In this document: piece by piece, positions 40,501-43,500 of the stretch | Layout: the number at the start of each line of letters is the position of its first letter | Numbering within the stretch: the first letter of the stretch is position 1 | Assembly: GCA_012026655.1 (NCBI GenBank) | Contig: JAAILG010002464.1 | Location: 1 to 54,363 of the forward strand | Direction of reading: 5' to 3' | DNA from: Hydrolagus affinis | Taxonomy: Eukaryota | DNA length: 54,363 nt | Notes under the pieces: generated by a model | The model's input: the letters and a program-made list of their open reading frames with translations, nothing else | Database searches by the model: none | Told to the model about the DNA's origin: nothing | Position numbers and translations under genes: made by a program

Positions 40501-43500
40501 AGTGGAAAATTTCTCAATGCTGACATCTTTAAGCATAAAATTCTCCCCCCATTTCAAACAAGGTTATAATCGATGAATGTAAGTACAAAACATGTCTGGT
40601 GCCCTGAAAACTTGGCTAGATAAATTTAATCAATTACTAAATGCATTTGCCCGATCAATTCGAGTTTGTTTTTTCCCTTCCTAGTTATTAAAGTAAAGTG
40701 CTCCCAAGACACCGTCCCATGTGAATGCCGCTATATAAATTCAAGTTGTAATGTTAACACAACATACTGTAAAATTGAACGTTTGAATGCTCAATAGTAT
40801 TTTGTTTATGTGCAGCAACTAAAATGCTTCTATTCAGATCTCCATTTATAGGAAATCCTGGTTAAAGACCTTGTTCTGTGATTTTTAGATATCAATTGCC
40901 TTTTTACACTCATTTAATCGGTAACTTTTTAGATTTATCCTTGTCAATTTCCTCCCAGCATCTGTGAAGTGTTTGACTCTTTGATGGGGTGCAGTTCCAA
41001 AGGCAATAGTTGCCACCTTGCCCAACTTGGGTGTATGCACACACATCCAAGCACAAATTCTAGTGTGGAACACAAGGAATGGGCATAAATTCCCATTAGG
41101 AATGGGGTTCCTGGCTTTTTTTGTTTTCTCCTCTTTCCCAACCGCTCAACTGTTAACTGTAGTAACCAAATTGTTAGCTCAGCTGAGGTTAGTTAGTGGC
41201 TCTGATACCATTTGCTTGCCTGTTCTGAATGCACTTTTTACATCCAGCCCATATAGATTGCAGGGCTGCCGATTTAAAGGCAGTTGATAGTCAATAGAAA
41301 CACCAGGCTTCTCCGCTAACTTGACCTAAAAGAAAATTATCTTAAAACTCCACTAAAGGCTCAGGTGTAAAGCCACTATCTAATGTGAAACTGTGCAATA
41401 AAGACCAGAGTGGTGCCTAGTTTGATTCCCATTTTGTCAAATTACCTAAACTTGGTTGGAGAAGACATCAGGGGCACTATACAATTGCCCTCAATGTTTT
41501 CACGTCATCAGGGAGAAACCTAATCAGTTTTGCTTTAGCTTTGGTCAGTGATGAGGATTAACAATTTTTTTTGTTTAAGGTGGGACCATCCAGCACAATG
41601 TGCGGACTTTTTTTTTGCCAGAATAATAATCTATGTGTGTAGTTTAATTCTCCAACATTTTTCCTCTTCTTAGGGTCAGTATTGACCCATCAAAACAGCA
41701 GACTTCGAACAAATCAGTGCCCGCCAATACTCCACAAGGATCAAAGACTGTTAGTAAGTCTTCAGCCTCTAAATCTTTCCTCCTCTTGACATTTATTTTT
41801 TTTCCTTACGCACTTGCCAACCCTGAATGTTTAGAATTCCTCTTCTCTTTCAGATTTGAAATCAAAACGAGTTTTCTACTGTCAATATAAAATAAATACT
41901 ATATTAACTTAAAATTGATTTCTAAAAGTTACAGCATAAATGCTTTGTAATGTATACAGAATTTTTTTTTACAGTGCTAATAAATCAATACAAAGTGTTA
42001 GATTACTCTTAATACAGTCAACAACAGCAGATAAATATAAATTCCCATCTTGGACCTAGTCTTAAAAGAATTGGTATTTTAATGCATCTATATTATCTGA
42101 CCAGGATGTACTATTTATGGTGTCAGCTGTACCATTTCCTGCTGTGGAGAAATGCCATCTTACTTCCCCGCAAATTGCTTTTCAGTGCATTTTAAAGATC
42201 CCTTGACTAAACCAAAGTTCAAGGCCATGATTGATGTATACAATTTCAATGTAGGTTATAAATATTTGTGAGAAAATACTTGTGTAATTGTGTGTCTTAA
42301 AACACAGTTCATAAAACGTAGTAAATTTTGGAGTAAGCATTCCATACTTTTATACCACTGAAGCATTGAAGAAGTATGATGTACCCCCTGAAATGAACAT
42401 TTCAGAATCATATAAAATGAAGGAAGCTGTAGTGTGCTTAAAGTAAACTCGACAACTCAGGATGCTGTTGACCTGTAGAGGCTGACAATCACCTTATTCG
42501 TTTCTGATTTCTTCCTTATCTTTCTCCTGGTGACTTTATTGTATTAAGTAGGCAAACTAGTAAATGGCTGGCAGTCAATTTCACAGAAGTATTGGTATTA
42601 AAAGGACAGCTTCAGTATAGTACTTAATGTCCTGCAAATGAGAACCAAATGGATACGTTAACAAAAAATTATTTGACAGTTAATGTACTACTGTACTATG
42701 TTGCATTCAGATTTTGACTAACAACAGATTTGTTACAGCCTTGGAGTGATACTTGCATATGATATGGGCATGGGAGATGCATGTAATTCCAATTTATTGG
42801 GTGACCTGACACATTGAAGAAAAATGCAGGAGAACATGGAAATTTGATGTATAGGGAGATATGTGGCAAATTGCATTGTATAAAGATGTGGTAGTACATT
42901 TTGTCAATGCACAGGTAGCATGTAATCATCTAAATAGTCAACTATTTCAAGGGTAATCCAGATCTGGGCTTTGACATTACATGTATAGATCTTTAAAAGC
43001 AGAACTGCAGGGGTCTGGAAGATGTGGATTTTGAATCAAATAAATTGTAGTCTGTAGCTGTCCTGATAATTTGCTTGCCTTTTCTGAATAAACGTTTTAC
43101 ATGTAGTCCATATAGATAGATCAGAGGGTTGCTGGTTTACATCCTGGGCTTGTGTGTTGTGTTTGCAATTGAGCTCAGTTTTTTTTTTAATGATATCAGC
43201 CAAAATTCCCACTGCTGATCGGTATTCAGAAATTCCTTCTGTAAGAATGTGTGTATGCACGCTCTTGAGAGGATAGGATTGCTGATGGTCTCCATGGTTG
43301 AATAGGCTGCTGACATCATCAAGAATGCAGTTTGGGTGAGGTACCTGAGGGTTTGTATTAAATGTACTCCAGTAGAGGGAGGAAGGATTCAAGAGTATAG
43401 GAGATGAACAAAATGGTATTCCAGTTAATATATTTAAGACAAAAATGTAATCAATTTCACATAAATTGTTGCAGGATCACATTTATGACTGCACGTTCCA

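Follow-up and report, generated by a model that had tools for sequence, protein, structure and literature searches.

A probable MARK4S-type frame-shifting exon in a MARK3-type kinase gene of Hydrolagus affinis

The window, which is the whole stretch of 54,363 nucleotides analysed here, encodes a MARK-family kinase gene on its + strand. The features of the 3' end of this gene are collected in Table 1. A segment of 80 nt occupies the intron right after the exon ending in ...KLTSKLTRR and lies ahead of the KA1 exon. The initial annotation had described this segment by its length, splice sites, open frame and the positions of the neighbouring exons, and all of these were confirmed in the sequence and its translation.

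Table 1. Features at the 3' end of the MARK-type gene in the window.
Feature	Position	Strand	Basis
Constitutive spacer exon, ends ...KLTSKLTR + AG (phase 2)	34505..34765	+	73%/83 aa to shark MARK4 P0039; 94%/81 columns to gecko MARK3 P0011
Same spacer exon as donor: can donate to the 27-nt, 80-nt, 45-nt or last exon	34505..34765	+	Ends in AG at 34765
27-nt in-frame cassette exon (NMSFRFAK), keeps phase	36402..36428	+	Acceptor ag 36400-36401, donor gtagga
Probable 80-nt frame-shifting cassette exon, homologue of MARK4 exon 16	41674..41753	+	tblastn homology, splice sites
CU-rich flanks of the 80-nt exon, 100 nt per side, with PTB-type motifs	41574..41853	+	Motif count
45-nt cassette exon; 14 residues in the KA1 frame, 14 in the shifted frame	45123..45167	+	Shifted frame like MARK4S
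Start of last exon, shifted frame: 24 residues, stop TGA 47537-47539	47463..47539	+	62%/29 aa to the end of P0039, E 1.4e-5
Last coding exon, normal frame: linker + KA1, stop TAA 47805-47807	47463..47807	+	PDB 1ul7 MARK3 KA1, 203 bits

The identity of the gene was investigated with its UBA, spacer and KA1 exons. The UBA-domain exon scored best against the MARK3 chains of the PDB (57.8 bits), followed by MARK4 (47.5), MARK2 (36.5) and MARK1 (34). The KA1 exon scored 212 bits against a 120-residue MARK1 chain and 203 bits against a 102-residue MARK3 chain. In the alignment, a diagnostic KA1 stretch of 20 residues was identical to MARK3 of PDB 1ul7, and MARK1 differs there. A tree of the spacer exon was built on an alignment of 69 rows with 82 columns, without P0072 and P0073, in which fewer than 55 residues aligned. 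In this tree, the window adjoined P0004 and P0011 (gecko MARK3 per the source; 94% identity over 81 columns) and fell outside a 17-row clade with support of 99/97, which contains the mammalian MARK4-type fragments. Judged by these three exons, the gene is orthologous to MARK3 and less close to MARK1, MARK2 and MARK4.

If the gene were really MARK4 or another paralogue, the exon would simply be MARK4 exon 16. The slightly higher score of the KA1 exon with the longer MARK1 chain than with the shorter MARK3 chain could be read in this way. However, the UBA exon scores highest for MARK3, the diagnostic KA1 stretch is that of MARK3 and unlike MARK1, and the spacer exon shares 94% identity with gecko MARK3 and falls outside the MARK4 clade. 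Such an identity is extremely unlikely, and MARK4 was rejected on the UBA scores, the KA1 stretch and the spacer-exon tree. The same three results uphold the MARK3 identity given by the initial annotation, which had asked whether a phylogeny would make the gene MARK4; the spacer tree answers in the negative.

In the window sequence, the exon bases 41674-41753 (+) amount to exactly 80 nt in the context ttttcctcttcttag/GGTCAG...CTGTTA/gtaagt. Bases 41675-41752 translate as an open frame of 26 residues in the phase set by the upstream exon. AG ends the exons at both 34765 and 36428, the phase is the same from either, and the split codon AG/G gives R (arginine). Because the exon length is 2 mod 3, its inclusion moves the downstream reading frame. 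The frame through the exon is open up to 41887, and an AATAAA lies just past it at 41891-41896.

The quality of the splice sites was compared among five 3'-terminal exons. The 80-nt exon had the highest pyrimidine share at the acceptor (0.82) and the only perfect donor (GTAAGT, 6/6). The chance occurrence of such sites was counted with acceptors of pyrimidine share >= 0.80 (54 acceptors) and GTAAGT donors (21) at a spacing of 40-200 nt. Five pairs of this quality were present in the whole 54-kb window, one of them being the 80-nt exon. The splice sites alone are not beyond chance and the homology is; it is because of its homology to MARK4S, not because of its splice sites, that the segment stands above chance. 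Another of the five pairs falls at 31206-31362, on a reading frame that looks like a MARK spacer exon.

The open frame around the upstream spacer exon was used as the query for related proteins, and 70 protein fragments were obtained at E <= 0.001 among 74 candidates. Four of the 70 (P0039, P0066, P0072 and P0073) run beyond KLTSKLTRR, and in each of them the S-type peptide follows directly after this motif. P0039, annotated as hypothetical, comes from the shark Chiloscyllium punctatum and has a complete tail. It lies inside the MARK4 clade of the spacer-exon tree (support 99/97) and is therefore shark MARK4, not MARK3. P0066 comes from hamster and is of the mammalian MARK4 type, although its source name is 'MARK3-like'. 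P0072 is bird MARK4, and P0073 is a bird fragment with the source name MARK3 whose 30 residues immediately ahead of the exon are the same as in P0072.

The whole 54-kb window was then searched in six frames by tblastn with the natural S-type proteins of shark, hamster and bird. The tail of P0039 matched 41675-41752 with 70% identity over 27 aa (E 1.7e-7). It also matched 45125-45166 in the +1 frame of the 45-nt exon (12/14 residues, E 6e-4) and 47450-47536 in the +1 frame at the start of the last exon (62% of 29 aa, E 1.4e-5). The three matches were colinear, and the best match outside them had an E value of 1.3. The exon peptides of hamster P0066 and bird P0072 matched the 80-nt segment with E values of 5e-6 and 2.5e-5, and bird MARK4S was identical to the shifted frame of the 45-nt exon at 11/14 residues. 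The exon has 26 codons here, 27 in shark and 26 in hamster, and its length is always 2 mod 3. Its identity between paralogues (70%) was close to that of the constitutive upstream exon against P0039 (73% over 83 aa).

The homology of the segment to MARK4 exon 16, which the initial annotation had put forward, is borne out by the E values for shark, hamster and bird. The alignment with the MARK4S C-terminus that it had called for gave matches in the exon and in both downstream shifted frames, and the MARK4 exon-16 peptide that it had given is present letter for letter in P0066.

Were the 80-nt exon included in the mRNA, following either the exon that ends at 34765 or the 27-nt exon, its 80 nt (2 mod 3) would shift the reading frame. 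The last exon, over its first 75 nt, and the 45-nt exon where it is included would then be read one base off, and translation would end at TGA 47537-47539. This stop of the shifted frame is inside the last exon, 268 nt ahead of the normal stop and upstream of most KA1 codons. Read in that frame, the downstream exons are open and similar to the tail of MARK4S, ending short of the KA1 domain. The predicted product would be a kinase that retains the catalytic, UBA and spacer parts and carries a short basic tail in place of KA1.

In the last exon, the shifted-frame TGA comes from the ATG AAA in the conserved WSMK where KA1 starts. Because the KA1 codons are conserved, the short form has no freedom in its stop and last few residues, and these do not count as separate evidence that the second frame is under selection. 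Read from the codons, part of the tail similarity is forced, since the stop and the last residues derive from the invariant RFTWSMK codons of the KA1 frame. By the same reading, the short-form tail of MARK is partly fixed by invariant KA1-frame codons.

The results suggested that 41674-41753 is a genuine, selectively maintained and functional MARK4S-type exon of the MARK3 orthologue, corresponding to exon 16 of MARK4; a probability of about 0.8 was assigned to this reading from the sequence.

The exon was also compared with assembled contigs. The run search listed nine contig-only runs for one organism, in which the RNA label is a guess, together with one DNA-like set and three raw single-cell runs of another organism. 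Four of the contig runs (X1, X2, X3 and X6) were compared over 41600-47599. No joint at 41674 or 41753 was listed in any of the four, a comparison of low power because the ordinary joint 45167->47463 was present in only one of them (X2). A repeat at about 47320-47410 crowds the loose ends of the contigs, so that a spliced contig ending at the acceptor may lie outside the matches listed.

Run X2 contained a 156-letter contig with a depth of 28.3 that covers 41672-41825; it begins exactly at the acceptor AG and passes the donor by 72 nt. The same run contained a 1412-letter contig with a depth of 13.4, whose first 92 letters correspond to 41610-41701 and overlap the 156-letter contig by 30 letters. 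The remainder of this contig is taken to lie in the intron upstream of 41600. On the assumption that the contigs were built from a word graph of 31-letter words, the 30-letter overlap and the doubled depth fit a second path merging at the splice site, which is a hint and not proof. A contig of run X3 (41727-41888) is unspliced across the donor. The lone difference inside the exon was 41722 C>T in X2, which is synonymous.

Protein searches were investigated for MARK3-type proteins with the exon. Among the MARK3-type protein fragments, 0/28 carried it; these fragments are reading frames called on unspliced DNA, which could not show the exon. The 43-aa frame around the exon gave three low-complexity matches and no MARK among 1.84 billion representative proteins, a set in which isoforms collapse at 50% identity. 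The 80-aa open frame of 41648-41887 gave one candidate and none scored, and the P0039 tail returned only P0039 itself among two candidates; in both searches the length window of 0.55-1.75x the query excludes full-length isoforms, and neither outcome counts against MARK3S models.

These results bear on the possibility that the segment is a relic of an ancestral exon that is no longer spliced in the MARK3 of this lineage, a silent pseudo-exon. The lack of listed joints in the four runs, the contigs that stay unspliced at the donor, and the lack of a protein fragment with the exon from the exon-frame and P0039-tail queries are consistent with such a relic, but the contig runs compared have little power. 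An identity to the exon of the paralogue of 70%, about as high as that of the adjoining constitutive exon, is, by this comparison of sequences, not expected of a dead relic after so old a duplication. The frame is still open and the length still 2 mod 3, of the five 3'-terminal exons scored it has the top pyrimidine share and is alone in having a perfect GTAAGT donor, and a May 2026 preprint (10.64898/2026.05.28.727796) includes MARK3 in its genes whose dual coding region is preserved. A silent relic is improbable on this evidence. The read-through contigs are consistent with a different possibility, use of the exon mainly as a composite terminal exon that is entered at 41674, ignores its donor and finishes at an intronic poly(A) site, giving a KA1-less protein with a different and longer tail. 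Contigs in X2 (41672-41825) and X3 (41727-41888) pass through the donor, the open frame to 41887 has its AATAAA just beyond, and the gene models P0066 and P0073 also read from MARK4 exon 16 into the intron. However, pre-mRNA or DNA carry-over gives read-through contigs too, P0066 and P0073 are predictions, and onward splicing is favoured by the gtaagt donor, which is perfect, and by the conservation of the shifted frame in the two downstream exons. A composite terminal exon was thus considered quite improbable.

The frame shift and the early stop are also what a poison exon would produce, which would lower MARK3 output via nonsense-mediated decay and yield no protein. By the established rule, an mRNA should be spared this decay when no exon junction follows the stop. 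Whether the 45-nt exon is included or skipped, the stop at 47537-47539 falls in the last exon, and no junction comes after it; the mRNA should therefore escape nonsense-mediated decay. Both frames of MARK4 are under purifying selection according to the preprint (10.64898/2026.05.28.727796), which also speaks against this reading. A poison exon is very improbable and was rejected on the position of the stop. From the exon structure, a stable mRNA for a KA1-less kinase is expected.

The MARK4S-type exon may be regulated in the same way as its MARK4 counterpart. PTB-type motifs were counted in the 100 nt on each side of the exon. There were 15 motifs, compared with a mean of 3.3 per 200-nt tile, and only 1.2% of 1078 tiles contained 15 or more. 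For MARK4, PTBP1 is reported to drive the exclusion of exon 16, and MARK4S is reported mainly in brain. By analogy, a neural, PTBP-repressed pattern is no more than a reasonable guess for the 80-nt exon, and its neural inclusion may be held down by PTBP1 as reported for MARK4. TGCATG (UGCAUG, the Rbfox motif) was absent from the + strand within 1 kb of the exon except at 42778. Rbfox control of the exon is not proposed, as no UGCAUG is close to it.

The same intron, the same frame shift, the homologous exon and the homologous shifted tails in MARK3 and MARK4 support a long-form/short-form (L/S) switch that predates the MARK3/MARK4 duplication. The initial annotation had drawn this conclusion; it follows from the homology and agrees with the dual region described at family level in the preprint (10.64898/2026.05.28.727796). 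Its accompanying remark that descriptions of the switch are usually confined to MARK4 is out of date at that level. According to the preprint, a dual coding region is common to MARK1, MARK3 and MARK4 and has been preserved across chordates. MARK is listed there as a family in which the region is kept in several paralogues; such regions are described as gained before duplication, with examples that do not include MARK. The MARK4 region is reported to have dN/dS < 1 in both frames and a brain-specific isoform. As far as the preprint text goes, the evolutionary point is already in print at family level.

An 'exon 16' of MARK3 appears in two splicing papers and is not presented there as frame-shifting. 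The literature search, in which papers were judged partly from their abstracts, found none naming or studying a KA1-less MARK3 isoform. Human RefSeq and UniProt may carry a short MARK3 isoform with a distinct C-terminus, and MARK3 is a tau kinase.

A broader reading, held tentatively and at a little under even odds, would make the L/S C-terminal switch an ancestral module of the whole MARK family under nervous-system regulation. MARK3 (and MARK1) would then make a PTBP1-repressed, KA1-less neuronal isoform with a functional short basic tail, and much of the brain biology of MARK3, such as tau phosphorylation, may use it. If this is true, that form of MARK3 would be neither membrane-bound nor autoinhibited. 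KA1 is reported to bind acidic phospholipids and to autoinhibit PAR-1/MARK. As KA1 is both an anchor to acidic membrane lipids and a brake on MARK/PAR-1, a KA1-less isoform should differ in location and activity, and the protein would presumably be changed in these respects by the loss of KA1. If MARK3 makes the same switch, studies with KA1-containing constructs alone overlook a natural form of the enzyme. In evolutionary terms, the locus is a clean case of a frame-shifting exon and its two-frame reading retained in paralogues since before their duplication. The window adds a concrete and well-delimited instance, in which the shifted-frame stop is seen to be built into the ATG AAA of the WSMK motif.

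The closest known system is the S/L switch of MARK4 via exon 16, which is textbook knowledge for that gene. The 80-nt exon has the same place after the ...KLTSKLTRR exon and the same length as MARK4 exon 16 (26 codons + 2 nt in hamster P0066). The peptides are homologous, and the shifted tail runs via the next exons to a stop before KA1 in both. The CU-rich flanks here would suit PTBP1 control. Unlike in MARK4, the host gene is MARK3, and the 27-nt and 45-nt in-frame cassettes around the exon make more combinations possible.

The shifted frame of 45123-47539 would correspond to the dual coding region of the preprint (10.64898/2026.05.28.727796). Both frames are open over 45123-47539 and the shifted one matches shark MARK4S; the main text of the preprint gives neither coordinates for comparison nor a description of the MARK3 exon, and we infer that the two regions are the same. 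The preprint also describes ATP2B1-4, NFIA/B/C/X and DCLK1/2, where an alternative exon reframes a downstream coding exon and the arrangement is older than the vertebrate paralogues, and it ties many ancient frame-shifting switches to brain isoforms. The proteins of these families are unrelated to MARK3, and the likeness is an analogy of mechanism only.

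The reading frame of the 80-nt candidate cassette exon was open across its donor as far as 41887 (region 41754–41900), and an AATAAA hexamer lay beyond the end of this frame. The donor was crossed unspliced by contigs in X2 and X3, two of the four contig-only runs mapped. A read-through form of the exon with intronic polyadenylation is possible. Upstream of the cassette exons, two overlapping Rbfox-type TGCATG motifs were located 8–17 nt past donor 34765, and the pair possibly acts as a conserved element that controls the splicing of these exons.

The TGA that ends the predicted KA1-less short form arises from ATG AAA, which encodes the conserved M-K of the WSMK motif at the start of KA1. 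The +1-frame stop is present in every MARK gene in which the WSMK motif is retained. Two variants in the last exon, 47493 A>G and 47553 T>C, were present in three of the four mapped runs. Both were synonymous in the KA1 frame; in the shifted frame, 47493 A>G changed K to R.

An interspersed repeat with a unit of about 107 nt occurred in the window, and its copy at 47300–47406 sits immediately 5' of the last-exon acceptor. In the runs guessed to be RNA, thousands of contigs were drawn to this copy, and their summed depth reached as much as 428085. This pile-up indicates that the element is abundant in the transcripts or the genome of the run organism. A CT-rich low-complexity stretch was found shortly 5' of a run of N, which is an assembly gap or mask.

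Sequence features in the window
Feature	Positions	Remark
CT-rich stretch	21144–21703	
Run of N	22087–22186	100 bases
TGCATG pair	34773–34782	
AATAAA	41891–41896	
Short-form TGA	47537–47539	
Interspersed repeat, 6 copies	2573–2679, 38034–38140, 47300–47406, 50506–50612, 52351–52457, 53726–53832	62–100% identity to reference copy

Two protein fragments that continue into a MARK4S-type peptide were compared with their source names. The hamster fragment P0066 was named 'MARK3-like', yet its sequence was of the MARK4 type and the tree placed it in the MARK4 clade. The crane fragment P0073, named 'MARK3 kinase, partial', was also of the MARK4 type by sequence. Judged by sequence, both fragments probably carry wrong source names. 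In the 30 residues preceding the exon, P0073 was identical to the bird MARK4 fragment P0072 at every position.
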